64,000 nucleotides of DNA from Oculina patagonica (lineage: Eukaryota), in NCBI RefSeq assembly GCF_052425735.1, contig NC_135765.1, positions 1,364,001-1,428,000 of the forward strand. The letters run 5' to 3'. Positions 3,075-59,015 of this stretch are shown here, one piece after another (the first letter of the stretch is position 1; each line of letters opens with the position of its first letter). The notes under the pieces are model-generated. The model had not been told where the DNA came from and ran no database searches. It was given only the letters and a program-made list of their open reading frames with translations. The translations under genes and the position numbers were made by a program.

Positions 3075-5228
3075 ATGGCCGACAACGAGAAATCCAGTCC
3101 ACTCCGGCTCCTTGTGGCGCTCGCTATCGTGTTGTTAGTGGTGTATTGCGTGTCATTAAGCGTGTTCTTGGTTTATTTGATGCGAGATTACAGTCTGTTA
3201 AAAGAGCACGTCCAAGATTTGCGTGGACGAGTTGTTTCTTTGGAGGCGGATAGAGTTGCAGCTAGGGCGACAGCGACAGTTTCGCCCTCGGGTGACCGAA
3301 AACGACGAGAAAACAAAGAATCAGACCTTCAGGTAATGCAGAAAGTTGATAAACACTCAGTGAAATACTTCCTGCGCAAACATATGCTATATTTTATTGA
3401 TAGCGTGTTTGATAACTAGATAACTGATGCAAATTAATACCACAGTAATGTTATACTTGACTGCGTGTCGACGAATCTGCATACTGCTATTGTTTGCCAT
3501 TGTTGATCTTTGTCTACCCAAACAGAACATTTACCAAATTGCTGTCTTAACATCTGATACTTGAGTAACAGGGTGGTGTAGTCACTGACAATCCTGCACG
3601 ATTCCAGCAAAGGTTGTCGTAAACCATTATATTGTTCAGTAAATAAACCTGTGTCAGGATGCACGTTATAGAGCTTTCCGCTTCCTTGTCGATTTCCGTA
3701 ATTAATATTAATCATGTGCCCCAGGTCATTAACTTTCCCGCTGAATTCTTTTGATGTAATTCTTGCTCTTCCATTGTCGTTTATGCCACCCAAAGCTTGG
3801 TTCTCCTTTGATCACCTCGATCGTTTCTATCACCTTTGTCATTTCTAAAAGACATCTTGCAATCGGGGCGATTATATGAGAACAAACTACGCAACAATAC
3901 ATAGACTATCGCTAATTCTGGGGCGATGGGGGCGATAATCCCCTTGGACCCCCCTTTTCGGTCTAAAACTGCAAATAACTGAGAAGATAGGAAGCCACGA
4001 GTTTTGCCCTTTCATTGAAGGCTGCCATTGTGTTGGATCCAGGGCTAAAATGATTGTTTTACGAGGTCTTTGCTCATAGCAGGCGATCGGGACGATTATA
4101 TGGGAACCCCCGATCGCTTCCAATCGCTTCGTTTCGTCTCAGTACGATCGATGCGATCATATGAGAACCAGCCTTAACGCGGTTTCAGATCTGCCATTTA
4201 TGACGATTTTCACTCAGTATCTTCCAACAGAATCCACAATGAAGTTTGTCTTTGCTGGTTTATTTATGAGCTGTACTGTCTCGTAAGTCTGAGAGCAAGA
4301 AACAACCAAAACAATACCCCAGCAGTGCAGCATGCACCTCCTCGTCTACAAAAAGCGCATCCAGGGTATTCTCTGGTAGTGATCGTAGCACACAAGCTGT
4401 GGTGACTTGAACAGCCATCAGAGCGTCTTATGCTTCCAAATTTTCTGCGCTATCCAGCACCATAGTTCTCCAAAATGCCATCACGTTAGCAATCTTGTTG
4501 ACATTTTTTCTTCGCAACGTCTACGACTCCTTGAAAAACAAAACAAGGAAAAACAGTTTTAGTTTCTTAGAAATCGTTGTACTTCGTGGGTGGAACAAGA
4601 AAAACACTTAAACGCCGTAGCGAGTTAGGAAGCCGAAGCTGGCGTTGGGGATGAGGTAAGGGAGGGGGGGTGGCAAATTATCGGCCATGGCGGCTTATAA
4701 ATTTAGGTATAAATTTTACCAGCGAGGGCAAAATACACACCAGCTTTACCACGTCTGTTATATACCGTGAGGTGTACAGCTGTACTAACAGCATCATCAA
4801 CAATTGAAGTCTTCATGACGTGGTCTAGTCCAGCTTCTCGACCGCACCTTGTCTCTCCTCTTTTGAACTAAACTTCCGGCGCAGAGAAAACGGTAGACTT
4901 TCTCAAAGTCAAAATAGGGTGTATGGGGGTCGATAGACTGAACTAAACAACGCCCTGCTAATATTGTATGTTAACTTTTTCATTCATAGCAAACTAAGAT
5001 TGCTGACATCAAGAGCATATTCCCTGGAAGAGTCAGACGAAACTCGCAGTCCCAAGGTGCCTGTATCATGTGTACAAGCCAGGCCGGACCCCCAGGGCCT
5101 CGCGGGCCGCCAGGACCCGCGGGTAAGGGATTTTTGAGGTTTGCTTGATCTAAAAGGGGAATACGGGGATTATCAAATTCACTAATGCTTATTACTTGTG
5201 GGGGGGGGGGCCTCTCTTTTTTTTTGGG

Positions 5229-5262
<34 letters not shown>

Positions 5263-8200
5263 CGTTCCCCCCCCCCCCCCCCCCCCCCGTTACTTGTCCA
5301 CTCAAGTCACGTCTTTGCTTCTGTTTAACTTTTCAGGTCCAAAGGGAAAAAGAGGCCGAAAAGGAAATGAAGGTTATTATCCACCTAAAAGTGTACTTCT
5401 TGTAGCATTAGTTACGTAGCTCCCTCGCAGACGCTGTTTGGGCTCGTCACGCAATCTTCCCTCGCGTGGGGTTGGACAGAGGCGTGTTGTGTGACGAGCC
5501 CAAGGAGGACTAAATAGAGGCTATTGACAGCCGCTATTCCTAGAATATTCTGTAAGTCTACGGTGACAAACTTCCAGGAAAAATCAAAAATAGTTCGAGT
5601 GAGAAGAAGACATTCAGTTACTTTCAAATCGAAGTGGTTTCTCTTTTCTTGTTTTGTCAAATAAACACTATGTCTGAACACCTCTGAAAACCGGAAACTT
5701 TGATTCTTGGCAGTTATTAATGGAGATACTGATCAGTTAAAAGCTGCTGACTTTGCCTTTAAAATGTAAACGTTATTTTAGTCTTTAGAGACTGTTCTTG
5801 AATAAACATGACAGGAACAAACATGCTACTTTCGTTGTTGTCGTCGTAGCCGTCACACAACGCCTCTCCCTAACGAAGAGTGGTGCGTGACAGTCTAAAT
5901 AACGACTTTGACGGGCCTTATTTCGACGCTAACGAAGGAAGCGACCAATCTACTTCAATCTACGTTTTACAAAGTTTCTTATTTATTCTGTTTGGCCAAA
6001 TGAGCTCTATTGTGATAGCTTATAACGCCTAAAACGTAACGTTTTGCCATATTTTCTTTTAAGGTGTTGCCGGTCAACCAGGACCCAAGGGTCACGTGGG
6101 ACCTCCGGGACCCTCCGGGCCACATGGCCCTGAAGGATCCCCGGGTACACCTGGGTTAAAGGGAGATCCCGGACTTAAAGGTAGGACGATATTTTGTACA
6201 CAAACAATTGGAAATATACACAATGGGCCTTTTCCAACATACAGTGACATGGTACAAAATCTCGCCGAGCTGGATGGCAAGCTACGCACTGAGTCGTCAA
6301 AAACAAAGAAAAGTAAAGCTTAGCGATTGAAGTCGCTTTGGGGGTCGCATTCTCTTGCCATCCATCATGGCGGATTAAACAGCTTGTTGCAAAAGGCCCA
6401 TTATCATGCCAATTAAAAAAACCCGTTTCTTTTCTTCACGGAGTTTTGGGAACAGTAAGACGAGAAAAGGTGAGGTGTAATAAGCGAGTTTTCTCACAGA
6501 AATTTCGAGTTCTCCCAAACTTTTTCGTGTGTTTCCAATAAATAACGTTTTCTCAAAGAATTTTTCTAATTTTCTCTCCTTCATAACCAAACGCGGAAAT
6601 AATTTCTACCAATCACAGTGGGCGGAATATCGTGTTTATTTCATATAGAGCCACTGTGCAAACCAACAAGACATCCAATCAACATAGGCGTTAGAAGTAG
6701 CAGTTTGACTATAACACCGAGTTTTTTATGAGTGAATAGTCAACAACGCGCATCCGAGATAACTATCTTAAGGGGGGGAGAGTAGTTACGGTTACTATGA
6801 ATGAAACAGGGCAGAGATTACAAATAGGGCCCGCGCAATGCACGCGCTTTACTGGTCACGCTGTCAGCTAATAGTGAACGATTAGAAAACCAAATATATT
6901 CGCGGACTTCCAACAGATCACGACGAGTTTCTAGTACAAGTGGATATCAATCAATTTTGACTGATATTTGTTTGCTTGTTGTTTATAGGTGAACAGGGAC
7001 CGCCAGGCCTTATGGTGAGTCAATTTGTTTAGACTTCTACTTTATGGTACACTGTAACGAAACAAATTGTATTTCTACCACAAACAAACAAAAAAGGCTT
7101 AAGAAATACAAATAACATGTTTCACAGCTTACTACTTACCATAACTAATCTAAGCAAACGTTAATTTAAACGAATTTCTTTCGTGGTTTATGGTAAAATT
7201 CGATAGAACTTGTTCAGATCAGCTGCCGAATTTTTCCTTGAATGTTAAACTATTTCACGGCTGCTCACGAAACGAAATCTTGATTTTTCAGGTGGCAGAA
7301 AGCGCTCATTTGGTAGGCAACGGGAAAAGAGTGGTTCATGCTGGTAAGGATGTCTTCTTCATTTATTTTCTAGTTTCTTTCCTCAGTTGTTTTCTGATGA
7401 CTTTTAAAATTCACTAGCTACGACTCCACGTTGCGCTAGCCTGCGTAGTAGGCGTCTGTGTACGTTTTTTAGCGCCTTTAAAAGAGCGCGTGATCGCGAG
7501 AAGGCCTCGATTTTTTCCTCGCGTGGCCCCCTCGCGCCTTTTGTGTTTCCCGTTTTTTGCGCGCTCGAAACTACGGAGGCTAACTTTGCGCCAGCTTTTT
7601 CGTAAAGTTTCGTAAAAGTCACGTGAGCTAAGCAGTCTAAGCAGCTCCGCACTGCATTCTGGTCATGTGAGAAACATCGCCGTTTAAAACATGACTGCAA
7701 GAGAACTTATGAACTTCTTGAATCATACTTTAAAGCACTTAGCGCAAAACAAAAGCAAACAATGTAATAATTTTGAAAGTCATGCGGATAAACACTTATA
7801 AGTTACCCTGTTTTCCATTATCCGAGATTGCATTATTCAATCATTGAGTAAAAACTAGCATTTACAAACTTTTAAAGCTTCTTCCACAGGCACTGTGCAT
7901 CGATGGAGGGAAAGCCATGTTAATGGAAGCATCACGTTCAGAAGGCACGTGGGCGAACTTGTGATCGGTCGTTCTGGAATGTACTATGTCTACAGCCAGA
8001 TGTACTACAGCGATTGTTCCACCTACTCCATGAATCACTACACTTTGCTGAATGGACGCAAGATCCTTGGCAGCATCTCAAGTGTGGCAGCATGCAGGAC
8101 ACATTACAACACGAATTTCCAGGCAGGCGTTTTTCATCTGAATCGTGGTGATATTCTTAAGGTTGAAGTGTACAGGAGTAAGACGTACTACATGGATGAT

Positions 8201-8269
8201 CCTTACAGCTACTTTGGAGTGTTCATGTTGTATCCTGACCAAGGTCAAGCTCGTTTGCCTCTGCCTTAA
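3075..8269 (+). CDS. G1: collagen-containing TNF superfamily ligand (ectodysplasin-A-like), ~333 aa, 7 exons: 3075-3332, 4990-5122, 5337-5372, 6064-6180, 6989-7014, 7292-7343, 7890-8269
   Basis: MADNEK start, TM LLVALAIVLLVVYCVSLSVFLVYLM, furin sites RKRR and RVRR, CIMC, ~24 Gly-X-Y triplets including GPKGKRGRKG, strand A (ESAHLVG), and a THD exon with G.YYVYSQ and YFGVFML motifs. All introns are GT-AG and phases are consistent (sum 1002 nt). Confidence 0.9.
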
Positions 8270-10992: not shown

Positions 10993-13900
10993 ATGGAGAA
11001 ACGCGGTCACTCGCGAGCTCGCAGCAACTTGATCTCGTTCGTGGTTCTTATAGCTGCAATCTACGTCATCCTCGTCACAGTTTTTATAGCGACGCTGTAT
11101 CACTTCACAGTGTGGCAGTCTGCTAGAATTCAAACACTCGAGTCAATTGCTGATGATCTGGCAGCGCGTGTTTACAAGTTAGAGACACGTTTGACAGCTC
11201 AGGAAAATCAAGAAAATGACGAGAAACCTGTGGGTGAAATGAATCAAGATGTGAAGGAAACGACGGAAAAACGTCCTGGGAACAAGGTTGCTTTAATACT
11301 CGTCATGCAATAAGTGGCTTCTTTCTGTTGTACAGAAATTATGCATAATTTGACTAAATGCAGCATCGCTTCATTCAAACGTGCGTTGTTGTTCGTTTTT
11401 GCAGCAGACACGTTTGAATTCTTTCCAAACAAGAGACAAGCGACAGTTTCAAGGCTACGATCTGCCCAGTGAAGGTAGGCTTCAATTGCTGTTTGTGTTG
11501 TAATGCTTCACGTCTTTTTCAGCAAACACAGTTCATTGTTTTTGCATGTTTAAAGTTCACGACCATCCACGCATTGGGAATTGGCCGATGCTTCTGGAAT
11601 TGATTATGAACTGAATAAACAAAGATGGCCGAATGATTACTGTAACTGTGCAAATATTTAACTAGCAGTTGTACAGAAATTTTCTCAAAGCATTGTTAAT
11701 CGCAAAACAAGTAAATTTCGGAAGTGAGAGATCAGGAGACATTTTCTCACTATTATTCTTATACAATGTTAATTAACGCAGTTGGGAGATTAAAGTCACT
11801 GATGATCATATAAAGCATTCGCAGGTATAAACTAGTACACTCCTGTCGCTTATTTGAAACTGCAACGAAAGGGCGGAATATAAAATTGTAATTGTAAGAA
11901 TATTGTTCTGTTAATTAGAACGCCGGCTGAATGAGCAAATTGAACTTTGCCAGGTTACTTCCGCATATTTTTAGCTAATGAATTCTATCTTCATTTTAAT
12001 ATGAATATGCTTCTTGGAAATTTTTGCGTTTTTTTGCCGTTTGCTAACTTTTCGACATCGTTCTGTTGGTTTACCAAACTTTTCATTCATTCAAAGACCC
12101 AACAAAGCACGTGCTTTTCGTCAGCTCTTCCGTCCTGAGTAAACTTGATTCCCATTGGCTGAACAAAAAGGAAACCAATATAAAGCCGTCAAGGAGATGA
12201 CAAAAAACAATCAAAAGATCAATCGGGGGCAACATGAACGACGCGATTCAATATAGAGTAGTTAATTTATATTTCGCGCAATAACTCTTACAATTTCACA
12301 CTAGTTATAATTTGGCATTTATTAGAAGCAGATTAGATGTGATTAGCGCTGGACAGATGGCCGACAAAGACTGACGATCATTTTAAAAATTGAACCTATC
12401 TTGGATGGGACCGATAACGCAGGTTGCACCAAAACTAAAGACGATCCCGCAGGCGTAACACTCGAGCGCAAATATAAATTACGACTTTTCTCGTCAATGA
12501 TACCCTAAGGCCTACGTTTAAGTAGCAATCCATTTTGCTTAATCACGTACAGAAATCAAAACGTAAACCTTAAACTGAAATATCTCTTCATATTTCTTTA
12601 ATTGCAGGATTCCTATGCGGTAAGAAAGGTAAGAGAAGAAACGGCATTGTTTGGTGAAGTAATCTGTTTTTGTGGTTCATAATGTCTAGTTCTATACTCA
12701 ATTCAATACAAATTTTGTTTTTACTTATAAATTTATACATTGTAGCTATAGCAGCGAATACAAACAAACAAGAGAAATTACATATAATTAAACTTATCGA
12801 AATGTAGCAATAGTGCCATCATGGAAGACATGGTTTAAAACAAGTTTTTTTTCTTTATAGGTTGCAAAGGCAAGAAAGGTAAATTGATAGAACAATAGAC
12901 ATTTGTATATAAAATTTGAAATCAACATGTATGTATAACACTGATGGCTATTTTTTGAACACGCGCTTCACATGCAGTTTTATACTTCTAACACACAACA
13001 AAATTATACGTTAAGAGCAATAATTGTTAAACCAGAATAGAAAAGAACTGTATAGTTTAACTTTATAGAAAAGAAGTTAGAGCTTATCTTTTTAGTTTCA
13101 CCTTTTGTTGTCCTTTTTAGGAGAAAAGGGTGACCAGGGTGACCCAGGCCCACCCGGACCTGTGGGACCGCAAGGACTTCGTGGAGAGACTGGGCCGAAT
13201 GGTACCGACGGAAGAGTAGGTTAGACAACGTCGTTCATTCCAGCTGTGAGGATATTGTAGCGAATAACTTCACAAGCTTAAACAAAAGGATTCACCTTGA
13301 AATTCACCTGAATTTTAACAGGAGCCGATCCTTTATGCATTTATAAATGTTAAGGTGGTGGGGGGGGGGGGGGGGGGGGGGGGGCATAGGCCGGGCATTT
13401 GAACTTAGCTGAGACTTTCTGATCAAATGCCCAACCCCAGGGCATTTGTGGATGTTCAAAAGAGTCACTAAACGTCAATAAAATGTTGTAACAAAGTCCA
13501 TTATAAACACAGTCAAAAGTCCCCACCAAGGGCAAACAATTACTGTTAAATCCCCTGCCTATACCTGGCCTCACCCCCGCCCCCCCGGCGGCTTAACCTT
13601 GATTGGTGCATTAGAAATACGTAAAACTAGAGCTGAAATTGCGTGAACAACAACAGCATTTCTTCAAACGAGGAGGTTCTTTATACCTAGTATTATTGTT
13701 AAGTAAGCTCTAACTTTGACAATGACGTTCCCTGATGCTAACGAGATGACGCGAAAACTCAGTTACGGAATTTTCACTTCATGTCTGCGAGTAACTCTAC
13801 AGGTGGTTTTCACTGTCATGCTACTGTCACGCCGCAAAAAAATAAATCCAAAACTATTGAGTCAAAAAAATCAAGAATATTACAGGTTGTAGAAAACTAC

Positions 13901-16900
13901 TATATAAACTACTTGTTCAAGTCTCAGGTTACGTTATTTCGTACTCGAATTAACCGTCAAAACGTTTCACGCAAATTTAGAGAGCACAGAATGGAGACAC
14001 CATGTTGGAGCCCAACTGCCTGGGCTCCAACATGGCGGCTGGAAATCAATGAAAACATCTGGCATTAAATTCTGCAACAAAAAGCGATCAGATCACCCTC
14101 ATGAACAAGTAAACATTCAGGTAAACACTTCTCGCAAAACCTTAACTGTCCAGATTGTCAAAAATCGCAGGATGAGGCATTTAGAAAACGCGACAGCCTC
14201 CTGGCGGCCATCTTTGATCTCGTATGGCGTGAAACTCCGAAATTCAAAAAGCTCTATCTTAATGACGGCAACTGCTATCGAGCTAAAACCTTCAACAAGA
14301 TATATTAAGGACGTCTAATAGCCAGTGAAGGATAAAACCTCAGGGGTCTTGCGATTCTGGGTGTTAGAATTTTGATGACGTCAAGTGAAAACCAGGAATA
14401 CAGTATGTTGCCCTATTACCGGACACTTTTTGCACTAACCGTAATATCTTACCTCAAAACAGCACTTACGAGCTGAAACTTACCCACAATGTAGCTTCCA
14501 CTGCTGGTAAGTAGCTCGTGAAGTTTTATCTTCTAAATCTCTTTGGCTTCTTTGTAATCACGGAAAGAGTTGGTCAAATTCGGTGCCCTAATTCCGGACG
14601 AGTTGCCCTAATTCCGGACGATCGTTACGAGGAAAATACTCCCTTTCTCTCGGAAATATTATTCCCGATCATGGCAAAATATAAGTAATTAGGGCTAAAT
14701 AAAGAATTATTCTTTTGAAAAATTGTCTTTCAGGCAAAATTTAAAGCATTTTTCTTTCAATTTTAGCGAGGTAATCATCAGACCATTGACATAAACAATG
14801 TTCAGTGAATGTTTCGGCCACTTGAAACGAAGTTCGCCAACGAAGATTAATCAATACCAAAACCGGTATTGAAGCTTAAATACAGCACAGACAGTTACAA
14901 AAATGCCTTTTTTTCAAAACCTATTCCGTAAAATTGTTTTCAAATAGGTAAACAAGTTTGCTGTAGGTATGCGTCCGGAATTAGGCACACCTCATTAAAA
15001 ATTCAACTTAACTCTTTGGTGACCGTGCTCGGAAATTAAGAGCGAAAACCGAAAATTTATTATATGCTGATAAACCTAGTCCTTTTACCTTTACTTTAAT
15101 ATATATATAAATATAATCTATCGCGCACTTTGCGAGAGCAGAGCGCTTTATTGAAACGATGTAGTTTGACGCGCTGTAAAAATCGGATTTAAGAAGAAAA
15201 AATTTTTACCTACCTCCACGAAAACTTGAATTTTCCCGTCTAAACGGAGCGCAGCTCGGCCAAGAAAAGAGCAAACGAAAGCAGACTAATCGCTAAGTCT
15301 TCTGAACATTTTGTTTAACTTAATTTTACTGTTACGACGATATACGAAATTGTTAAGTCGAAGTGTCCGGGAATAGGGGTGTCCGGGAAATAGGGCAACA
15401 TACTGTATGTTTTGTTTGTCTGTTTACATTTGCACGCGATCGATCAATCTTCAGTCATTGCCAATCTCCTCATAACATCATTCACAAAAACCAGCAGTAA
15501 CATATCTTACCCTCCCAATCTGAGACTCCCGTTTTCATTTCCAAACACCCACATTTCACCTTGTTTGAGACAGTGCGCTGTATAGAAAAACAATAACAAG
15601 AAAAAAGGATATCTTATTTTTATCTTTAGGCAAAGCAGGACCTGCTGGTCCCCAGGGCCCACCCGGTAAAGACGGTATTCAGGGGCCCCAAGGTATCAAG
15701 GGAGACCAGGGCGAAATAGGACCTCAAGGAGCCATGGGTCTTCAGGGGCCACGAGGAGAGCCAGGTTTGGTTCTTTCACTAATCTAGTTAAAGGCTTCCG
15801 CGCCGCATTGAAGCAGAGTATGTTCACGGATATTAATTAAGTGAGGTCAAAATTAAGCCCGATATATTACACCGCTCTGATGAAGTTATTCAATAAATCG
15901 AAAAAAAAAATCACTCAACATCAACAGAATCTAGTCTTCCATCAATGCCATGAACAGTTTACTTTGCCCCAAGGGATCTCCCCCCCCCCGCACTTTGGCA
16001 CTAGCCTCACTAGTATACGTAGCAGCAGCTTAAATTTCTAATTCAATTCTACTTTTATATCTTCACTCGGTCAATCGCTCATACTCTTTCTATACTCCTT
16101 CAGTTGTCTTCTTTCAGTATTTTCTTATTTACCAATCTGTATCCAAATTTCACTGATACCTCTCTGCACATTCTTTTCCAGGACCGCCCGGCCCACCTGG
16201 CCTTCTTGTAAGTATCGCGCACAGTATTGTCACTTTAATAGGAAACAGTTTTAACTCACAGCGAGCGTTGGGAGAGTGTGATCGTTCGGGCTAGGATAGT
16301 CCTGAAAAGCATGATTGCTTACGACCGACATTTCATGAACCTGAGCGAAAGTCACTCTTCAGAGGGGTTGTCGACCTGAACTGCGGCTCATCCGCGTTAT
16401 AACAGAGTAATTTAGCTTCGAGTGGTGGTTCATTTAAGCTCAATATTCATAACTCACCGTACCTTTCAAGTACACTTCGGCGGCATATCAGACGAGTAAA
16501 TTTGGTCGAGCCATGGTTCGCATTTGTGCCGAAGATCAAACGAGCCTGATCTGTCACCGAACACAGCAAAAGGTTCGATTGGGTATTAACCGTACCCAAA
16601 TTTGCCTCAAAATCTTGGATATGAGGTCAGTGAATTGATATCGCAGGCAATCAGGGCAGTTCTAGTAGATTGGCTTATTGCGAATTTGTGTACGATAAAC
16701 TATAAACTAGGCATAGGTTTTCTTGTGGTTGTCTTTTGTTAATGTTAACCAATAAACTTATTGTTTCTGCTTTGTTATAAATTTCAGATAAGCGAGAGCA
16801 TTCATTTGGTCGGAAAAGGCAAACAAACAAAACAAGCTCGTAAGTACAATCATAAAGTATGACTCGCTTAGAACCAAGAGTGACTAACATCGAATTTCTC

Positions 16901-28700: not shown

Positions 28701-28939
28701 ACTATGACGGTTCCACCATACAGATGGGTCACAACACCTATATCAATCATGAGAAGGTGATGGAAAGTGCGGGGAGCGTTATAAGCGCCGAACGAAAATA
28801 CAACACCAAGTATCATGGCGGCGTTTTCTTACTTCAGGAAAACGACACCATCTCCGTTCACATACCGTACACCACGCACTACTTCATGGACAGCGAGGGT
28901 AGCTTTTTCGGAGCGTTTTTGCTGCACTATATCGATTAG
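22703..28939 (+). CDS. G3: collagen-containing TNF superfamily ligand, ~368 aa, exons 22703-22984, 23136-23205, 24553-24597, 25405-25431, 25919-26026, 26564-26698, 27660-27685, 27971-28022, 28578-28939
   Basis: Exon 1 paralogous to G2 ([11 protein letters not shown]), furin RDRR, CPC, ~38 Gly-X-Y triplets including [18 protein letters not shown] strand A, and a THD exon ending in TAG. Phases are consistent (1107 nt). Confidence 0.9.
26790..26990 (-). mobile_element. tRNA-derived SINE in G3 intron 6
   Basis: On the - strand, tggcgcagtggtgagagcgctcgcc...ggttcgattcc (A/B-box-like head) followed by a non-tRNA body. Confidence 0.6.
27136..27348. mobile_element. TA-flanked MITE
   Basis: TA|CCTTATTGTTACTTATTTTCGC...GCGAAAATAAGTAACAATAAGG|TA. 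Confidence 0.7.
28132..28564. mobile_element. TA-flanked Tc1/pogo-type MITE ending 13 nt before the G3 THD exon
   Basis: TA|CAGTAAAAGCCCGCGAGTAAGAACCT...AGGTTCTTACTCGCGGGTTTTTATTG|TA. Confidence 0.72.
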
Positions 28940-45000: not shown

Positions 45001-47519
45001 ACGGAATATCGTCTGATTTTAGCCAACTCGGCCTACGGCCTCGTCGGCTAAGTATCAGGCGATATTCCGCGCGATTTCGCAGGATAATTGCCAATTAATC
45101 AACTTCAGGATATTGTATCCATTTAATTACAAACAAATTGTTAAAACTAAAATGGTATTATATCAGAAAGGAAAATGAGTATTTTTAGACAAATCCAAAT
45201 TGCAGTCTACATTGTCTAGCCCAAAACGTGTATTGAAAACGAAACCTTCGTAACCAGATTATGATATATCCGTCTACAGGGGGACCTCCAGGTAAAGCAA
45301 CATTCATGTCTCCATATATTTTTTCTATTCGGAGAAGCGGTAACTTATGTCGGTCAGCCCAAGATTTTCTTAAAGATTTTTTTCCATTTCTTATCAAGTT
45401 TTGCCCTGGGGAAAATGTAACGGTCTTAGTGCTAGTTTACCTACTGTTTCTTGTTTTCTTTTTGATTTCGTCATAAGGGTTGCATAGTCTAGACTATTGT
45501 TTTGTTATGTGGTCTCCGTTTTCACATTATACTGCTGTATCTTTGACTTGTAGGATTGGATGGACCCCCGGGGGAACGAGGCGAGCGGGGAATGCCCGGG
45601 GCACACGGCCCTGCTGGCCCGGCTGGACCCCCAGGTAAGGAGTTTATAGTTTAGGAATGAAATTAATGAAGTCCTTAAAGTAGTTTCATTGTTTTACTAT
45701 TCTTTATGTCCACTTTTACACTTGAAACAAAACTGAACAATCAGAACAACGTATGGCGACGTTTTTGTAAACAGACCAATGACATTGAAGCATCGAGACA
45801 ATAATTGTCCTGCAACCTGAAAATTTGAAATCAAGTGAAGACAAATAAAGGTCTGATGTTTTACTTGAATTTGTATACTATATACGTTTCGCCCGTTATT
45901 TTGTACGGCGGAGTTGGATAATAATTTGGGTTATTGCCTTGATTCACAAAGGGGTTGCTTTAACAAGACGTGTTCGGCGCATGGACACAAGTGCTTGCCA
46001 AAGGCATTAGTGGTTCCACGATTTTAACTCGCAGACATACCGCAAACAATTTCCGTTTGGCAGGTTTTGGACAATTTTCTGCTAAACGAACGTTAAGAGT
46101 CCATGGCGGTCCAAGTTTGTTTCTGTTGCCACGCTTAGTCAAGTATCTTAGATCGACAACAAGTGAATTCAGTTTTTTTAATTTGCTAGCGCACAGGACT
46201 TTTTTTATTATTCGGCTACGTTCCAGCGCACGGGACACAAAGCTGTGAACAATAATAACAATAATGCAAAGAACTTAAAGAAATATATTCTCATGAATAT
46301 TCCGTTTGTTGTCGTCGCAGTTTCGGGTGCATACTCTTTACATATATACATAGTTAATGAGGGCAAGGGTCCTGCGCGTCCTTAAGTGTGTGTTTTGTTT
46401 TTCACATAGGATCAGATGGTCATGCGGGATCTGTGGTGAGTTCTACATTAACTTATCCACATATAATTTTCAAAGTCTGTAAATTCAATTTGTAAAGTCT
46501 GTAAATTAAGGTAAATACACGTGTTGTTGTTGTTGTCGTTTACAACTTCCATGTTAAGTATGCCCGACGCTGTTTTATTGATTGATTGATTGATTGACTG
46601 ATTGATTGACTGATTGATTGATTAATTGATTTATTTATATTTTGATATGACAGATCCATGAAAGTATCCACCTGGCTGGCAACGGACAAAAAAGTAAATG
46701 TATTTTACTTTTGTTTGGAAGAGATTCTCTAATCAGCACTTTTTTATGATTTTTATTTACATATGTTTTTTATTTGTCATGTCTTCTAGCGCGTTTTCTA
46801 TACAATGATTCCCACTGTCCCTTTCCAGTTCATGTAGTTGAAGAAAACTGATTTTAAAAATACTTTTTCGCGTTTCGTTGAGGCAAATGACTAACCAGAA
46901 ACTAGGAACATAACGATAGTGCAAAAGCAATGGGGGCTTTTTCTATTAGAAAAAGTAATTTTTATTCGCGGTTGCAGCGAAATTCTCTAAACTGCAGTTT
47001 GTCTGTTCTCTACTTGTCACGCAACGTTTCTTTCTTTTCTACATCGGCACCAAAGCATTGCGTGACACTATTTTCAACGGCCTCAAATGACACCATGTGA
47101 TTTTGTTTGCAGGTAACAGTCAACGTGTAACAAACTGGGCACTAAGGCACAGGGAAGGCAGTATCCTGTACAACCGAGTGACCGGACACATACAGGTGAA
47201 GAAACCAGGCTATTACTTCATATACAGCCAGATGTATTACTCTGATGGTAGCTCAACGTACATGGCTCACGCAACGCTCATCAATGACGAGAAAGTGATG
47301 GGAAGTGTTGGGAGCGTGATTAATTCCAAGAAGTTTTCAGAAACCAAGTATCATGGCGGAGTGTTCTTACTTCGGGAAAACGACACCATCTCAGTTCTCA
47401 TCTCATTCCGGCGTAATTACTACATGACTTCTAAGGAGAGCTTTTTTGGTGCGTTTAGGATTGGAGGTCCAGGAGCACAAGGTATCATACAATGGATGTC
47501 TACCATTCGCCATTATTGA
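33035..47519 (+). CDS. G4: long-collagen TNF superfamily ligand (up to ~474 aa), exons 33035-33226, 33350-33407, 34516-34587, 35859-35912, 36987-37040, 37707-37742, 38271-38315, 38623-38658, (38693-38737), 41954-41998, 42308-42343, 42849-42893, 43545-43580, (43615-43650), 43958-44038, 45554-45634, 46410-46435, 46654-46693, 47113-47481 (donor) or -47519 (stop)
   Basis: MEKKEK start, TM, furin RIRR, CTC, phase 1-1 collagen exons that are all multiples of 9 nt (up to ~81 triplets), IHESIHLAG strand [15 protein letters not shown]...FFGAF. Use of the bracketed exons is uncertain because they follow 34-nt introns. Confidence 0.85.
33714..34095. repeat. Minisatellite, ~37-bp unit x ~10, in G4 intron 2
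   Basis: Unit aaagcaggagtttctatttacgaattaagtaacaaac repeated head to tail with no spacers. Confidence 0.9.
34717..35065 (+). mobile_element. tRNA-derived SINE with an internal 21-bp tandem expansion (x ~9, ~34800-34990)
   Basis: Head cagcgcggccgagtgatttaaggcgctgg..ccgggttcaaatcc; unit gtttgttctcggttgtcccgt; related unexpanded fragments at ~48380-48700. Confidence 0.65.
35290..35760 (+). mobile_element. 5'-truncated LINE (CR1/L2-like) 3' end remnant
   Basis: Translates as LQIPLFRTAAGQRTFTYRAVNLWNSL..SLYSFK, typical of the end of ORF2 in CR1/L2 elements, followed by an AT-rich UTR and a (ttc)n tail. Confidence 0.6.
36612..36850. mobile_element. MITE with TIRs
   Basis: aggcctagtaaaacgag..aacatgtttcc / ggaagcatgttt..ctcgttttgccgggcct. 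Confidence 0.55.
38105..43920 (+). repeat. Three tandem, near-identical intron+collagen-exon units in G4 (~38105-38940, ~41780-42545, ~42680-43920)
   Basis: Each unit starts ctccaccttggaaacccggcgtttactat.., contains a 45-nt G..GY.G.KGEPGEK exon and a 36-nt exon, and has long identical intron stretches. Confidence 0.9.
39284..39745. mobile_element. Non-autonomous element with CCCGGGG...CCCCGGG ends
   Basis: G-run/C-run termini, internal tgtcctaaacagggt subrepeats, flanked by the direct repeat gcatgaaa. Confidence 0.55.
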
Positions 47520-48347: not shown

Positions 48348-49769
48348 GTAAGAACTTATTTTTTAAATTGTTTCAAAAGAGGCAGCGCGGCCGAGCGGTG
48401 TTGGGCGCTGGTGCTTATATATCTGGCAATCCGCTGGAGTTGCAGACTTATTGTATTTCTTTTAGGTTTTTAATTAATTCGATATAAGGCGCATTTGATT
48501 ACATCCATATTTTAATTTTCGCCGAACAAGCATTTAATTATTATAACATTAATATTATTACTTGTAATCCGGATTTCCCGGGTTTAAATCCTGCTTCCTG
48601 CGGCTGCCACTGGATGGATGCTTGTCCCGAATTCAACTCCTCCATACTTTGTATTTAGCCAACTGATCAGCCTCCTGCCAGTTGGGATTTTTAAATATGT
48701 AATATTTGTTTCATATACACGGCCCCACAAACTTCTAGCTTTGAACACAACCGTAAATAAAAGTATTTTACTTTACAGGTGCAGTCTAAGAACTGAATGC
48801 AGCATTGTCTTAGATGGATGATTACTGTTTGCATTAACTCATGGATTTAGACCTCACCTCACTGTATTGATTTGATTCCAGTGTGTATCCTGATGAATCG
48901 CGCTGATTGGTTCACAAGTTACGATGACCCGGATGATGAAAGATTCCACTTCAGCTTTTACTCTTAAAATAGAAAAAAAAAATGTTTGATTTGAGAACTG
49001 AACCACAGTTGATTTGATTATTGTGTACTGAAAAATATTATAATAGAACGTTTATAAGACAGTTTTCATATCTTTAACTGAGCGTATTTAAGTTAGTTAG
49101 ATCAAAGAGTTAACGCTGCAGTTTATATATCTGAATCATTCATTCAAATTCAATTTAGTAATACAACAAAAAAAGTATAAAAGACATCTTAGTTTTGGGG
49201 TTTTATTCTAGCGTTGTTTGAGGTCCTATCTCAGATTATGTTGTTGTTGTTATCTTAACGATTTGCGTCATTTTTCTCAGTATCAGCGGAAATGTTTTAA
49301 TCGGTTTTGAACTAAATTAAAGGAGGTAACGTTTGATTGACTTTTGTTTGTTTCATTAGCCTATGAGAAGCCTTGAAGAAATACGCGTGCCATTTTCTGA
49401 TTGGGTAATAATTGCCTTATTTGCCAGGTTCTTGAAGAAATTGTAGTTCTCCAATCAGAAAAGAGCACGTGTATTCAAACACTGTCACTTCAGATGGTAA
49501 TCATAAATACATATTAATTAAGGGAGCCACTGACAGCAATTGCGAAAGTCGTCGGTTTTTTTGGTGCGCGTTTACTCCAACCAGTGAGTTGGAGATCTCG
49601 CGATTAACTACTGGCGTTTTGAAGAGAACAGTTCACTTTTGGTTGCCGTCTGTGACTCCAAACCTGCAGTTCTGAATGAGGTGGATACTAACAGTAACTA
49701 AGCTAATCTAACTGTCGATTGGACAATACAAATCCATACCTTTTGTATTTCTTACTTTTTAGATTCGAA

Positions 49770-52040: not shown

Positions 52041-55000
52041 ATGGAAAAGAAAGAAAAGCAAAGCGGAGGGCAATTGCTTCCTGTTTTACTTGTTTGTATG
52101 TTGTTAGCTTGCGCGGGTCTTGTGTTTGCTATTTACACACACAGAGAACTCAGCTGGCTCAAAACCCAAATCCGTGAGCACGAGAAGCTCATACAGACCT
52201 TACAGCTCGGTAACAATGCTCGAGATATCCAGGTAGAAGACTCATTTTCCTGTTTGCATATTTCTGTAATTCAGTGAAAAGGTTTTGTTATTACGGAACT
52301 GTGCATCGTTTTTTATCAGTTTTGTTTATGTTTCGATTTCAGAGATCAGAGGCAGTTCGTGTCCGGAGAAGCGCTCAAGATTCTTGTACTTGCGTTGGTT
52401 AGTGCCCTGCTGTGTCTCAAATTTTTCTGTAGTAACAGTTTAGTATTCTATAGTAGTAGTTCTGTTTTTAGAGACATAATTTTGACAGACTCAGTTATCT
52501 GTCAAGTTTTATAAGTTGACAATTTATAGCCCTATCCAAGCCCTTAATCGATATCATGGGTTATTGCGTTTGACGTAAGAAGAACGCAACCTAATCCTGT
52601 CATTGCGTTCAATCACCGCTAGTATGTAAAGCCTCTGTAAAGGACCAAAACAAGTCCACATGGACCGCAGGAGGGGTGGGTGGGGATGGAGCTGTTCCCT
52701 CCTTTATCACAATTCGCTCATCCTCGGGATATTGTCGGCCCTCCAAGCTTCAGGCAAGCGTGTTCTTCACCGTCCGTAACCTGTTGTCTGTTTGCCATAA
52801 GGTGCTGGTTAATTTCACAGACATATGTGCAGTCTTGTCTGCATTCAATTTGTTCTATTTACTTCATCATTGACTTCTAGGAGCCCCAGGGAGACCGGGT
52901 CGGAGAGGGGAGCCTGGAAAACCCGGTCCTATCGGCCCCGCTGGCATTCAAGGTAAATATGCTGAAAATAATCACAGCGAACAACGTTCTTCTTACTTAC
53001 GTACAATTGTCTCATTGTTCTTCATTACACTTTTAAAAGAAATTATATTCCTCCGTTGATTATACATGGTCGAGCATAAACTTCATGAAGCTGCCATGAA
53101 ATATCATCATTTCATCATTTATTAGCCACTTTAAGATTGAAATATACAGAAAGAAACACCAATCTTATAGCCAAACTGTTTGAACCAAACTGTTTGAAAA
53201 AAAATAAAATTACATCACTTAGTAAGAAAAATTGGTGTTTATAGCTTGAGTGGACTGAGATAGGTTAAATTCAGATCGCAAAGGAATGTTGAGCCACAAC
53301 ACAGTGCAGTCTACATTTGATTAAAACTGATTATTACTTATCCAGTTAAATTTAGCCTTGACGTAATTGTGGTTAGCAATAAACATCCAGATTTTTTCAT
53401 CAATTTGATTTAGGTTTACCCGGACCAGTTGGTGTTCCAGGGCCGCAAGGCATCAAGGGAGACCGCGGGGATAGCGGTCCGCAGGGAGCCATGGGAAAGC
53501 CAGGTAAGATAGAGGCAACTCGTTCATACATTGTCTTTTAATTTTTCCACGCACGTAAACGCACGTATGTCTCACCGCGTTTTGGAGAAAATAACGCGTC
53601 AGTAGAAATCCACCTTAAGAAAAACAGGCGAAAACGCAAAAGGGTGGACCTGCGCCAGTCATCAGAATCCACTCTGTACTTAGTACCATGTTTGCGCCAG
53701 ATCCAGCCAAGAGAATAGCAAGAACTGGCGAATCTTCTGGAGCGCGCGTGAAGATCTCCGGCATGAGACTCATCACCGTACCACACACAAGACAACAACC
53801 GATAAATTCAGATTGAACACACACCTCGTTTCTGTCTTAAATTAAGTGATCTCCCTTGCACGCATCCCCGAATCAGGAGATAAATAATCACCGTTTCCTA
53901 GTCATATTTAAAGAGTTACACCAACTTTTTAAACGACCGTAAACATAAAATGTAGTATACGTTAAATATTACACAGGAACATTTATTAAACGTTATTTTA
54001 ATTATCAATAGGACCACCTGGCGTTACAGGATCTGCGGTGAGTAGTATAGTACAGTACAATTGCTGATCAAAACACATAATTATTCTCTTAAAAAAATCC
54101 CCTGTTGCGCACGTTAAAGCTGCCTTTTTTGTCTTTCAGATCCAAGAAAGTATCCACCTGGTTGGCAATGGACAACGAATAAGTAATGTTATTTGGGTTT
54201 TTTTTTTTGGTGTTTACTTTATTGGCTTTTTCTTATAACGGCGTATATAGAGACACCCATTCTTCCAAATGGGTGTTCGAAATGCTGTTAAAAAATTGAC
54301 ATTTGTTTACCCTCGGTAAATGATTTTGGCACAAGTGCTAATGGGCTGAGCATTTAAACATTAGAAACAAAAATTACAACTTAAAGGAGAAGCCTCGAGC
54401 CAAGTGGCCCATACTTGACGGAGCTTATCCCGGTTTCTGTAGCATTAAGCGGCTAGGAATTATACTACTCCCTCCTGAATGGGATGTAGTCCATCGCGCC
54501 TCGTCCATCGCAGGGTTACCCCACACAGCGGTCAAACGCAGCGCGCGTGCGCAGTTACTGTGCAATTCCCGCCAAACTTCTCCATACAAAGTCTTAAATT
54601 TTCCGAAAACTTTCGCTTTAATGCCAAAAGTTAACGCCGTCCCTGGAAAGTTAAGGTTTATACGCCGCTTATGGATTGGAAATTTGATAATTCATCTCCA
54701 CTGAGTGTCCCAGCTTGAACTGTTCTTTCACCGTACCATTTCTTTAACAATTTCCTACAAAAGTTTGCACACTTTCGAGACAAATTCTCAGAAAAGTTCG
54801 AGGCGCCGAAAACCGGAGGTGACGTCATTTTTGCGTTTGACCGCTGTGTGGGGTTACCCCCAGCATTATGTCGCCGGTACCCTTCACAGCGGTCATACGC
54901 AAAAATTGACGTCACATCCGGTCTTCACCGCCTCGAACTTTTGACTCGAAAGTGGGCAATTTTTTGTGAGAAATTGTTAAAGAAATAGTACGGTGAAAGA

Positions 55001-58000
55001 ACAGTTCAAGCTGGGACACTCAGTGGAGATGAATTATCCAATTTCCAATCCATAAGCGGCGTATAAACCTTAACTTTCCAGGGACGGCGTTAACTTTTGG
55101 CTTTAAAGCGAAAGTTTTCGGAAAATTTTAAACTTTGTATGAAGAATTTTGGCGGGAATAACACAGCAACTGCGCACGCGCGCTGCGTTTGACCGCTGTG
55201 TGCCGGTACCCATATATACACCTGGGTGGACAGCGGCACTATGAGAGTAAAGTGTCTTGCCCAAGAACACAACACAATGACCCCGGCCAGGCCTCGAACC
55301 CGGACCGCTCGATCCGGAGTTCGGCGGCGCACTAACCATTAGGCCACCGCGCCTCCCAAATTAAAAATTACAAATTAAGCATAACAATTAATGTCAAAAA
55401 TCCCAACTGGCGAACCAATTGCGTATTTACAAGGAGGAGATGAACTCGGCTTTACCGTGAAACAACTCCAGGAAGTGGTAAGAACGGGACTTAAATCCGG
55501 GAACTCCGAATTTCAAGTCTGGCGCCCAAACCGCCTCAGAAACGCTGCCTCTTTAATGTTCTTTACGAGTGTATTAATTCTTGGAACTTTGGCAAGTATT
55601 AGGCAAATACAAATAAAAAAATAAAAGACAAAAACTAATCTGGTAATCGATACCATAAAGAAGTCATAAACACCCCTTGCGCTCGCAAATACACAGAGAG
55701 ATCCGGGCGTTTCTAATTCTTGTCTACTAAAACTGAGTAGTTTTTAGTTCATTGGAGAATAATTTCACGGCAATGACGAAATTCATCAGCTGATCTCCCG
55801 TAGGCTGATATCGATATTTGTCATTATTATATAAACTGCAGTGGTATAGCGAGTGGTAGCACCTAGATAAAAATGGTATCACACATGTGTGGATAAAAAT
55901 GATATTCACAAATGTGTGATATCATTTTTGACCAATCAGCTCACAGTTTGCCACTTTTCAATGTTCAATGAGCCAAAGTTTATCGATATTAAGTCGAAAC
56001 ATCTTCGGATCTTCCTCGGCAATCTTTGGTATCACACTCGAAGATAAATTTCACTCGTGAGCTATCGATTTGAACACTCGAAGATAAATTTCATATCTCC
56101 GTGCAACCATGTATTATCCTCTATTTATCCAACGATTTTCTCTTCTCTCCATTAGAAGAAGCATTACAAGGTATCATAAGTAAAAACCAATCGTGATTTC
56201 TTTTGCAGTTTCTGAAAGGCAAACAATTACCAACTGGGACATCAAGCACGTGGAAGGCAGTATCTTGTACCACTCGCCATCCGGACACATTGAGGTGAAG
56301 AGAAAAGGCTACTACTTCATATACAGCCAAATGTATTACTTTGACGGCTCCCCCTTTGTAATGAGTCACAGCACCTACATAAATAAAGTTCGGGTCATGG
56401 AAAGTTCGGGGAGCGTTATAAGCACCCATCGGAAGTACAACACAAAATATCATGGCGGCGTTTTCTTACTTCAGGAAAACGACCTCATCTCCGTTCACAC
56501 ACCATTCTCGGCCAAGTACCACATGGATAGCAAGCGTAGCTTTTTTGGAGCATTCCTTTTTGGAAATGCAGAAAGGCAAGGTAAACATTCATTGATTGAT
56601 TGCTTGATTGATTCATTCATTTACTAGGTAATTACACTGAAGAACCTCTGGACGCACTAAATTTTTTGACTAGATGTGTTTCTGAAAAAATCGTTGTTGA
56701 GTTTAAGGATGCATCTGTGGAGCTCTAAAATGACCACAAACTGTGACTAAAAATTTTTAACTCATCCGGTCCGACGTTTCGCAACCGACGGACCTCATAG
56801 GCTTGATATCTTGGGTGGTCGCTGTCGGGAGGTTCGACTGTCCGCAAATCATTTCAGTATTTAATTCATAATTTCGCTACGAGAATGTATATATGGGCAC
56901 GTAAAACAAAATTGCTAATTACTCGGCTATTAAAAAATGAAGGTTCAATACTAGTTTTACTGGAACTCTATCCACCGAATTTTGAGCCGTACGAATAAAC
57001 AAATACATGTGATGCTCTGCCAATGCGACTGAGCTATAAAGCAGTAATGAACAAGTCAAAGGGGAGTTCAGAAGTCATACACATGGGCTGTCGATAGAGA
57101 TCTTCGCAAGGCAGATGTAAAGCTAGATAGCACAGAAAATCTTAGTGAGGCAAATCCACATTAACGGCTTGGTAACTGTTAATTTTAAATAGCAATAAAC
57201 TTAACTTAAAAGTGTTATTTACAGTGGAGTTCTTTTCTTACTTTCAGTGCTTTCTCCTCCCACAACCCTACCTCCTACTACACTAACGGGTAAGTTGCGA
57301 GGGGCCTTAGGAGGTAAAATTGGAACTGAGATATGCACAAATTTTCACTGGGAAAATGGATTTGGGTCACTGGGACTCGGAATCACAAACAAAAAACAGT
57401 GAAACTGGGAATGGGATTTGGGAAAATTTGGGAACCAAAAGGCTGGGAAATGGGATATGTACCCCCCCCCCCCTCCTTCAGGACCCTCCGTTGACGTTAT
57501 TCGTTTGATTACGTCACTAGACCATTTATTGTGTGTTTGAATGCTGTTGCTTAGATGTACGAGCCCGCCACCAATGTTTTAGCACACTGTGAGAATTAAA
57601 ATGTCTGCTTCCTTATTCATTCAGTTGCAAATTGCAAGACATCATGTGTTAACAATCACGAGAAGGGAATTATTTGCATCTGGTTTGGTTTTAACTGGGA
57701 ATCTCTTTTTTTTTTCTTTTTCTGAGAAAAAGGAGCGAAGCCAACCACATCGGTAAGAATTCTGTTTTTTACCTTTTTCCAGACTAGGTATAACTTGAAA
57801 ACCACTTGTTTTAATAAGTGATTGCTAACTTTGTAGGGGCAGTGATAGAGACCAAACTAACACGTCCCATCGGTGTCTCCCAATCTCCTCACACTCAGGG
57901 GAAATGGTTGCTAATACAACTTTATTCTTGTGTGGACTTGTACGCAGTTTCAGCGTGCTTACTTGGTCTGAGCCTGTTTATCTCATATCATTTTTCCTGT

Positions 58001-59015
58001 TCTTCTCATTTGTATTCATTCAAATAGTGACGAACTTTATCCGTTTACCGGACCTGTTTTTTTTCTTAAGGTAAGAGCAAGCATCTACTTAGCTGGAGAT
58101 GACACAAGCCTTCGAAATCCTGGTAAGTGAGGTTCATTATTAACCCGTCAGTTTATTCCTGTCATTTCATGTCACCCGAAGATATTGAGTTCAAATAAAT
58201 CATGCTGAACCTTTTTGAGGGGCCTGACGGGGTAAAATGGGAACTGGGACTTGGGCAAATTTTCACTGGGAAAATGAGATTTGGGTCACTGGGACTGGGA
58301 ATCACAAACAAATAAACAATAGAACTGGGAATGGGATTTGGACAATCGGAAAAACAATAGGATGGGAAATGGGTTTTGGGGCAAAATTGGGGCTGGGAAA
58401 TGGGATTAATAATTAAATGGGACTGTCGTTTTTGAATGCCGTTTATTTTCGTAGAGGTTTAAGTTTCGTTTATTCCCTTCACAGTCGCAGTTAAACCTTC
58501 AGCCCATGTTAGAAGCTTTTTACGAAATTTAAACCTTGCAAAAATAGATGTCATAAAACTCGCGCACTCCTTTTCATATTTATATAGCGTTCGTCTCAGC
58601 CCATTATATTCAAACATAACTAATCACGGATTGAACATTTTGTTTGTTAACAGTTAGTCATATCATAGCAAACTGGATTGTTCGCGACAAGATAGGCTCC
58701 ATTCAATACGACAGAGGCTTTATTATAGTCACGACACCCGGACACTACTTCATATACAGCCAAATGTACTATCACGACGCGCGCACACATGTAATGGCAC
58801 ATCACACTTACATCAACAATGAAAAGGTCATGGAAAGTATTGGAAGTTCAATCACTGATAGCACAAAGGACAACACCCGATATCATGGCGGAGTATTTCT
58901 TCTTCGAGTGAATGACACCATATCAGTTCGCATTCCGTACATCCGGGAATACAACATGAAAACTGACGCCAGCTTTTTCGGAGCGTTTCTGCTGTATCCT
59001 GGTGAATCACGCTGA
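52041..59015 (+). CDS. G5: collagen-containing TNF ligand with two tandem TNF homology domains, ~429 aa, exons 52041-52232, 52343-52397, 52881-52952, 53414-53503, 54012-54037, 54140-54182, 56209-56580, 57727-57752, 58071-58122, 58654-59015
   Basis: Exon 1 is nearly identical to G4. Furin RVRR, CTC, 21 Gly-X-Y triplets, IQESIHLVG plus THD1 ending CAAG|gtaaac, linker EKGAKPTTS, second strand-A exon VRASIYLAGDDTSLRNP, THD2 ending TGA. Total 1290 nt in frame. Confidence 0.82.
54522..54850. mobile_element. MITE copy 1 (TIR CACACAGCGGTCAAACGCA, 9-bp TSD GGGTTACCC)
   Basis: TIRs and TSD read directly from the sequence. Confidence 0.8.
54883..55202. mobile_element. MITE copy 2, inverted relative to copy 1 (9-bp TSD CCGGTACCC)
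   Basis: Reverse complement of copy 1 with few differences; TSD at 54874-54882 and 55203-55211. Confidence 0.8.

Follow-up and report, generated by a model that had tools for sequence, protein, structure and literature searches.

The TNF ligand cluster and its shared gene plan

The 64,000-nt stretch of Oculina patagonica DNA analysed here, called the window, contains a tandem cluster of five genes predicted to encode collagen-stalked type II ligands of the TNF family, similar to ectodysplasin-A (EDA) and Eiger. All coordinates are positions in the window, which has no N and a G+C content of about 40%. The genes, g1 to g5, are co-oriented on the + strand at 3075-59015, and the listing of open reading frames has seven intact exons for TNF homology domains (THDs) there. 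The interval begins at the ATG of g1 (MADNEK) and ends at the stop codon of the last domain, THD7. In public O. patagonica data the genes are annotated as hypothetical or uncharacterised proteins.

One exon plan is common to all five genes: a transmembrane (TM) exon, an exon with the furin site and cysteines, phase-1 collagen exons, a 26-nt exon, a strand-A exon, and a THD exon. The exons that recur throughout the cluster, together with the two genes of simplest structure, are as follows.

7890-8269, 17635-17996, 28578-28939, 30048-30409, 47113-47481, 56209-56580, 58654-59015, + strand: THD exons THD1 to THD7, open, each with a phase-1 AG acceptor
6989-7014, 16182-16207, 27660-27685, 46410-46435, 54012-54037 and, as the sixth, 57727-57752, + strand: 26-nt exons encoding (G)PPGPPG.., phase 1 to 0
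7292-7343, 16788-16839, 27971-28022, 46654-46699, 54140-54182, 58071-58122, + strand: strand-A exons encoding ..ESIHLVG.G.., phase 0 to 1
3075-8269, + strand: g1, 333 aa; exons 3075-3332, 4990-5122, 5337-5372, 6064-6180, 6989-7014, 7292-7343, 7890-8269
10993-17996, + strand: g2, 351 aa; exons 10993-11286, 11405-11474, 12861-12878, 13121-13219, 15630-15764, 16182-16207, 16788-16839, 17635-17996

The models were built by a frame-fixed junction search. The 5' exons were set from protein templates of Stylophora, Montipora and Porites, the second exon of g4 (33350-33407) was found by reading the sequence, and the 26-nt and strand-A exons were recovered by comparing candidate exons across the paralogues. 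In all five models every intron is GT-AG and there are no internal stops. Gly-X-Y runs of at least four triplets that are associated with the genes lie on the + strand throughout, and their exons begin with G after ag and end with G before gt, which is phase 1 on both sides. The g1 model is identical (100%) to RefSeq O. patagonica LOC144661971 X2 (P0203, 333 aa), which begins 19 codons upstream at ATG 3018. The g2 model is identical to O. patagonica ACROYT_G026995 (P0182) at 100% over 351 aa.

The predicted proteins share their order of parts. In each gene the first exon encodes a short charged N-terminus and then a single hydrophobic segment of about 25 residues; with the THD at the C-terminus, this is a type II topology as read from the sequence. 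Each protein has an R-x-[KR]-R site at residues 70-108, followed by 21-81 Gly-X-Y triplets and then the THD. The furin-type sites are RVRR, RDKR, RDRR or RIRR, with RVRR in both g1 and g5, and one or two cysteines stand immediately ahead of the collagen in each gene. The g1 protein has a TM segment, RKRR/RVRR furin sites, CIMC, 24 triplets and THD1; the g2 protein has a TM segment, RDKR, a single cysteine, 31 triplets and THD2. From g1 to g5 the stalks have 24, 31, 35, 72-81 and 21 triplets. A preliminary description of this DNA had reported five co-oriented paralogues with one exon plan and seven THDs, and the gene models and the seven intact THD exons agree with it. Its stalk lengths were right for g1, g2, g4 (up to 81) and g5, while the figure of about 38 for g3 is corrected to 35.

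A repeated element of about 160-170 nt (83-85% identity) occurs at 17415-17584 just 5' of the THD2 exon, at 58217-58407 just 5' of the THD7 exon, and at 57299-57454 in the linker intron of g5.

Alternative heads of g3 and the antisense element

The isoforms of its orthologues indicate that g3 has two alternative last THD exons, which would be mutually exclusive and follow one stalk and a shared strand-A exon. The parts of the gene are the following.

22703-28939, + strand: g3, THD3 isoform, about 359 aa; exons 22703-22984, 23136-23205, 24553-24597, 25919-26026, 26564-26698, 27660-27685, 27971-28022 (shared strand A), 28578-28939 (THD3 and stop)
30048-30409, + strand: alternative last exon of g3, THD4; its phase-1 acceptor fits the phase-1 donor of the strand-A exon 27971-28022
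29381-29445, + strand: antisense element of 65 nt between the THD3 and THD4 exons, a copy, in antisense, of a THD-exon 5' segment

The g3 protein contains RDRR, CPC and 35 triplets. The second exon was placed at 23136-23205 because the orthologues P0181, P0179 and P0192 keep LALSD.PQ there. No strand-A exon private to THD4 was found between 28940 and 30048 in any compatible phase, an absence accounted for if THD4 uses the strand-A exon of g3. A weak, out-of-frame match to ISIRLEGRG at 28932-28961 was weighed as a strand-A relic but not retained.

Orthologues in three other coral genera join the shared stem directly to a THD4-type domain. In the Orbicella faveolata RefSeq protein 'MARCO-like isoform X3' (P0192) the N-terminus, stalk and strand A are of g3 type and lead without a break into a THD4-type domain, and this THD is 88% identical to THD4 of the window. 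Similarly, P0188 of Porites evermanni joins a g3-type stalk and strand A directly to a THD4-type THD. Montipora capricornis has one gene whose RefSeq isoforms X1 (P0197) and X3 (P0152) do not differ up to and including strand A and then continue with a THD4-type domain (X1) or a THD3-type domain (X3). The order strand A, THD3-type exon, THD4-type exon is also found in three coral contigs (L006, L009 and L010). The THD4 exon has dN/dS values of 0.11-0.18 against the orthologous coral exons, which are intact. The point against this assignment is that use of THD4 in Oculina itself rests on orthologues and sequence logic.

The two-head arrangement appears to be ancient. The THD4 clade (support 95/94) has members from Oculina, Orbicella, Porites and Montipora; it spans robust and complex corals, and the arrangement therefore predates the split between them. 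This split is dated to at least 245 million years in the available text of PMC5730576.

Between the two last exons of g3 lies a candidate docking-type splice-choice site. An inverted-repeat scan of 27950-30450 gave two pairing partners for the antisense element, 28595-28654 in THD3 and 30068-30127 in THD4. The element is intermediate in sequence between these two exon sites and complementary to both, and an AATAAA follows at 29494, 50 nt 3' of it. It is kept in four corals (the window, L006, L009 and L010), which include both THD4 sublineages, and it is the sole conserved block of the inter-exon region in the four-species alignment, the remainder being at chance-level identity. The distance from the element to the two exons varies from 122 to 624 nt.

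The predicted duplexes are strong in all four species. With the THD3 site they have 42-46 bp and -63 to -69 kcal/mol, and with the THD4 site 37-45 bp and -41 to -58 kcal/mol, while duplex sums in background windows are about -24 ± 7 kcal/mol. By the same measure the best site of a g5 control region reaches -61.7, against -106.6 for g3. Both the minimum free energy and the centroid fold of 28590-30085 (1496 nt) contain the helix that joins the THD3 site to the element; in this segment the THD4 site is truncated and hence does not compete. Among the consensus pairs, 5 are compensatory, 18 are one-sided compatible changes, 39 are invariant, and 31 are broken in some species (20 with the THD3 site and 11 with the THD4 site).

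These properties suggest a way of choosing between the heads, and we judge the chance that the element steers head choice by pairing with one exon or the other to be nearly even. Were the element to bind the THD3 exon, this exon would be looped out and THD4 would become the preferred head. A duplex with the THD4 exon would instead mask that exon, to the advantage of THD3 and the proximal poly(A) site.

Only slightly less likely is that the element is a mere remnant of an ancient inverted duplication of part of a THD exon, perhaps kept alike by gene conversion, with no role in the choice of the last exon. Its minus strand still reads as a recognisable THD fragment, ..GKRHRSGSIETTGQ.., and polyadenylation alone can choose between alternative last exons. 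The broken pairs, each lost in at least one species, also fit a relic. However, a relic would have to account for a block that alone remains alignable in an otherwise nearly random region across both THD4 sublineages, that is kept although its distance to the two exons changes, that shows the 5 compensatory pairs, and whose sequence lies midway between the two exon sites and thus pairs with both. Two points weigh against steering by the element. It is derived from a THD exon, so its complementarity is partly inherited, and the covariation is suggestive only, with four species and 5 compensatory pairs against 31 that are broken in some species. The candidate splice-choice element is the most interesting and the least certain part of the locus.

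Two heads in g5 and the decayed module of g4

The gene g5 puts two THDs in one chain of one transcript. Its two parts are listed here.

52041-59015, + strand: g5, stalk part with exons 52041-52232, 52343-52397, 52881-52952, 53414-53503, 54012-54037, 54140-54182, 56209-56580 (THD6, no stop, phase-1 donor)
57248-57289 (Pro/Thr linker), 57727-57752 (second 26-nt exon), 58071-58122 (second strand A), 58654-59015 (THD7 and stop), + strand: second module of g5

The g5 model has 443 aa with one TM segment, RVRR, CTC, 21 triplets and two THDs in frame, and it has no second TM segment. The linker between THD6 and the second strand A has 29 residues, GNAERQVLSPPTTLPPTTLTEKGAKPTTS. Splice evidence came from contigs of four public runs, presumed to be RNA, that were aligned to 53300-59299. 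GT..AG joints occur at the predicted borders 53503>54012, 54037>54140, 54182>56209 and 58122>58654, and the last of these is present in three runs, with five variant letters at the exon start. One 677-nt contig (run X6) covers 56455-56580 and then 58659-59078 with 125 nt between them. This length equals 42+26+52+5, that is, the linker exon, the 26-nt exon, strand A and 5 nt. No pair of exons other than 57248-57289 and 57727-57752 supplies the 68 nt with good splice quality and correct phases, and the depth bins agree with this one. Two single linker exons of 68 nt were tried and rejected: 56628-56695 needs a 47-nt intron and does not fit the depth bins, and 57331-57398 does not fit the depth bins either.

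The same layout is kept in other corals. On contig L005 the g5 orthologue retains ..FGAFLLKNTAIQ with a donor behind the first THD, as well as a second strand-A exon (IRQSIYLSGDDTSLRNP). Contig L004 likewise has the donor behind its first THD, followed by an intact THD7-type exon, against which THD7 of the window has a dN/dS of 0.13.

It is improbable that the message with two THDs is an artefact, either of chimeric assembly of paralogues or of read-through, and that THD7 is a gene of its own. Several features of the data tell against the double head: the spanning sequence was assembled as a Logan contig in a run that bears the label of another organism (93-97% identity), its central 125 nt are matched by length only and not aligned, the RNA nature of the runs is a guess, and unspliced contigs occur in X1 as well, one of which crosses the THD6 donor. 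An artefact would nevertheless have to stop exactly at the predicted donor at 56580, resume 5 nt into THD7, and miss just the length of three predicted exons plus 5 nt. THD6 lacks a stop ahead of a strong phase-1 donor, and 56581-58070 contains no start, TM or collagen exon with which a separate THD7 gene could begin. The joint 58122>58654 in three runs and the layouts of L005 and L004 also favour the two-headed g5.

The g5 intron before THD6 contains, at 54513-55211, a near-palindromic repeat of about 700 nt that is 88.6% identical to its own reverse complement. In all four runs its summed contig depth exceeds the depth of the exons by a factor of 100-1000, which marks it as a member of an abundant repeat family.

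The gene g4 has the longest stalk, and sequence comparison indicates that it has lost a second THD of which a relic persists. Its exons and the relic are as follows.

33035-47519, + strand: g4, up to 81 triplets; exons 33035-33226, 33350-33407, 14 collagen exons, 46410-46435, 46654-46699, 47113-47481 (THD5)
34516-34587, 35859-35912, 36987-37040, 37707-37742, 38271-38315, 38623-38658, 38693-38737, + strand: collagen exons 1-7 of g4
41954-41998, 42308-42343, 42849-42893, 43545-43580, 43615-43650, 43958-44038, 45554-45634, + strand: collagen exons 8-14 of g4
48545-49153, + strand: relic of a second THD exon of g4; the body is decayed and just ..PPYFVFSQL.. at 48621-48665 is recognisable

THD5 is open up to a phase-1 donor at 47481, and reading through it adds 13 residues before the stop at 47517-47519. 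The relic tail at 48882-48906, which follows an ag and consists of TGTGTATCCTGATGAATCGCGCTGA, would read VYPDESR* if entered in phase 1. The tail and 3' untranslated region share about 70-85% identity with the end of the THD7 exon, and 48884-49153 matches the THD7 end and 3' untranslated region at 70% over 284 nt. A protein search 3' of g4 for a THD relic gave chance-level matches apart from the YFVFSQL motif, which stands 5' of the tail and in register with it; the nucleotide search recovered the tail and the untranslated region. On contig L004 a g4-type THD ends in ..EIQ followed by gtaaac, and an intact THD7-type exon stands 1.1 kb further on. The true 3' end of g4 rests on orthologues and sequence logic, and it has three candidates: the read-through stop at 47519, a splice 47481>48882, and the exon of the deposited model at 48323.

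The stalk of g4 has been lengthened by internal duplication of exons. The stalk blocks 38090-38940, 41768-42546 and 42663-43647 are 89-98% identical. The O. patagonica protein ACROYT_G026997 (P0185) is g4 with 12 of the 14 collagen exons (72 triplets) and another 3' end. It omits 38693-38737 and 43615-43650, both of which lie behind 34-nt gaps that are too short for introns. P0185 also truncates THD5 through an internal splice.

Two introns of g4 contain tandem repeats. An array at 33714-34078 (period about 37 nt, 94% identity) lies ahead of the first collagen exon. Another, at 34685-35103 in the next intron (21-nt period), has long open frames on both strands (PRTNTGQ repeats) that are not genes.

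Identity, age and relation to known systems

The domains of the cluster belong to the TNF family, as the preliminary description had it. All seven THDs pass the Pfam TNF profile PF00229 with 46.3-57.1 bits against a cutoff of 23. The solved single-domain chains that best match a profile of these exons are those of EDA (1RJ8, 7X9G and 1RJ7), followed by TRAIL, BAFF and FasL; with the coral THD profile the EDA-A2 and EDA-A1 structures score 64.5 (1RJ8) and 58.8 bits. EDA being the nearest solved relative bears out the earlier assignment of collagen-stalked TNF ligands. Among 1.84 billion representative proteins searched, the closest from outside Cnidaria are EDA and EDA-like proteins of deuterostomes and Eiger of insects. 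That the heads are C1q-type domains, and the genes C1q/TNF-related proteins or collagens, is very improbable and was dropped: orthologues do carry database names such as 'Complement C1q and tumor necrosis factor-related protein 9', 'collagen alpha-1(X) chain-like' and 'MARCO-like', and there are weak C1q Pfam matches of 16-18 bits, but every THD falls below the C1q cutoff (best 17.8 against 23.7, and three THDs without any match) while scoring 2-2.5 times the TNF cutoff, the matches listed among solved structures are TNFSF ligands in 60 of 60 cases (EDA, TRAIL, BAFF, FasL, APRIL, Eiger and TNF), and the proteins have type II anchors and furin sites instead of signal peptides.

The cluster is old and conserved, under purifying selection, and not fast-turning. 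In the tree each THD lineage of the window is joined by orthologues from further coral genera, robust as well as complex, and dN/dS across the lineages is 0.1-0.4. THD6 nests inside the THD3 group of robust corals (82% nucleotide identity). Gene order is common to Stylophora, Montipora, Porites and Nematostella. A Stylophora model (XP_022790792.1, P0159) fuses the g1 and g2 orthologues and has a second TM segment, and models of Porites evermanni (CAH3190916.1, P0175) and Nematostella (XP_048588376.1, P0219) are likewise fused neighbours, each with a second TM segment, so that the tandem arrangement is a shared feature. The consecutive numbering of the RefSeq accessions in Montipora and the adjacent locus tags in Oculina agree with it. 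Assembly or haplotig artefacts among the copies are just as improbable as C1q heads and were rejected, and the preliminary description too had called them unlikely: the near-identical internal blocks of g4 could be mis-assembled repeats, but any such effect is confined to the number of g4 collagen exons, since the five genes are strongly divergent (35-66% protein identity between paralogous THDs, 82% for the best nucleotide match between THD exons) and each has its own orthologue in other genera.

Other claims of the preliminary description fared unequally. The spanning contig supports two THDs in one g5 transcript, the orthologue isoforms support the 'orphan' THD as an alternative last exon of g3, and the relic tail and 3' untranslated region support the loss of a second THD from g4. 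A birth-and-death locus was an overstatement in view of the orthologues of each THD in both coral clades, the shared gene order and the low dN/dS; gene death is limited to the decayed second THD of g4 and a frameshifted THD5-like exon in L005. Independent diversification is partly right, in that stalk length, THD number and THD sequence do differ, but two of the seven THDs are heads of the single gene g3. Of the checks it had proposed, the comparison of gene order across anthozoans gave the shared order described above, and the phylogeny grouped the THDs with coral orthologues without placing them as one-to-one orthologues of EDA.

The relation to EDA is one of family rather than of strict orthology in these trees, which have short alignments, long branches and no human TNFSF member besides EDA. 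The cnidarian sequences form their own clade, which includes Nematostella 'ectodysplasin-A' (P0039), and vertebrate EDA, echinoderm EDA-like proteins, amphioxus, hemichordate and insect Eiger sequences stand outside it as the sister group. That the coral clade is not a one-to-one orthologue of vertebrate EDA counts against too close an equation of the two.

The gene models suggest a common protein design. The N-terminal anchor would hold the type II protein in the membrane and the furin site should release the ectodomain, while the one or two cysteines probably link three chains to one another. The stalk, a collagen triple helix of 21 to about 80 triplets without interruption, would carry the THD, which should form a C-terminal receptor-binding trimer, and EDAR-like TNFRs may be the receptors. 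Since strand A is encoded by a separate exon and all junctions are phase 1, the THD bodies act as cassettes that move as a whole. By such cassette changes g3 could place THD3 or THD4 on the same stalk and give two ligands with different heads. In g5 a second module of linker, 26-nt, strand-A and THD exons stands behind the first, and the collagen-held trimer would probably carry two stacked THD trimers. In g4 the second module is gone and the stalk is longer through exon duplication. Overall it is likely that the locus is an old conserved tandem cluster of five EDA/Eiger-like TNFSF ligand genes with THD bodies as cassettes, including the head swap of g3, the double head of g5 and the loss in g4. 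The fuller picture is rather doubtful when all its parts are taken together: a cytokine gene more than 245 million years old that swaps its whole head through two last exons, steered by an antisense copy that zips onto either, next to a natural ligand with two stacked THD trimers.

The design resembles vertebrate EDA, which has a type II anchor, furin site, collagen stalk and C-terminal THD in the same order and whose splice variants also alter the head. EDA-A1 and EDA-A2 differ by two residues, and this switches the receptor. In contrast to the single EDA gene, there are five coral paralogues with uninterrupted stalks of 21 to about 80 triplets, g3 exchanges the whole THD body instead of two residues, and g5 has two THDs. 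The TM-collagen-THD architecture and the EDA-like assignment are shared with Hydra HyTNF and with TNFs of Acropora and Nematostella. Cnidarian collagen-TNF ligands of this kind, tandem TNFSF duplication and multi-THD genes are already published. The available text of bioRxiv 10.1101/2019.12.13.875351 and PMC13367198 describes collagen-TNF ligands 'like EDA' from Hydra, Acropora and Nematostella, and that of the former gives collagen in two of five Acropora and two of four Nematostella TNFs and reports EDAR-like TNFRs in cnidarians. In the available text of both sources the five-gene cluster, alternative THD exons, a double-THD gene and the antisense element are not described, and a literature search found no description of alternative THD exons or the antisense element. 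Tandem duplication is the usual mode of TNFSF growth (PMC12843592).

Several THDs in one predicted gene are also known from other invertebrates. Multi-THD 'in-frame paralog' Eiger/TNFSF genes have 4 and 9 THDs in Hydra, 3 in an ostracod and 2 in an oyster (bioRxiv 10.1101/2024.07.27.603686). Unlike these proteome predictions, g5 has splice evidence, no second TM segment, and a structure kept in other corals. A protein search with residues 1-262 of P0175 for an annotated coral protein with two THDs yielded single-THD proteins alone, within a length window that limits what this negative can say. Proteome counts of multi-THD proteins need to be checked for fused neighbours (P0159, P0175, P0219) and mis-splices (P0185). 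The double-head design may recur outside Cnidaria. A Ptychodera flava protein (XP_070553352.1, P0054) has a single TM segment, collagen and two THDs. An Oscarella pearsei protein (P0088) has a single TM segment, collagen and one strong THD with a weak, partial upstream match, and Oscarella P0106 has a single TM segment, collagen and one THD that passes the domain scan.

The closest parallels to the antisense element come from arthropods. In Drosophila PGRP-LC the alternative 3' domains are under the control of competing RNA pairings (PMC6191721), and docking and selector sites are known from Dscam (PMC6071210). By analogy, g3 would have alternative 3' terminal recognition domains on a common stem and one RNA site complementary to each unit. 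Unlike in PGRP-LC and Dscam, the paired sites of g3 are inside the coding 5' ends of both last exons, and the docking-like element is an antisense exon fragment between the exons, just 5' of a poly(A) signal. If the element is functional, RNA-structure-guided exon choice, known mainly from arthropod Dscam and PGRP-LC, extends to cnidarians.

The cluster offers material for work on coral cytokines. Corals have greatly expanded sets of TNF ligands and receptors, for which links with heat stress and cell death have been drawn. The locus represents three natural re-toolings of one ligand scaffold, namely change of stalk length, head swap and head doubling. Isoform pairs with the same stalk and a different THD can be cloned and used for receptor matching, and a collagen-held chain with two THDs would be a natural counterpart of engineered hexavalent TNFSF agonists.

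Two minor observations concern the orthologous loci. A THD5-type exon 5' of the g5 orthologue (L005:707-1052) aligns in two frames (710-967 and 969-1052), suggesting a frameshift and a dying copy. In another coral, a retrotransposon (RT_RNaseH, integrase) lies just 3' of the orthologous cluster at L004:20040-20438.

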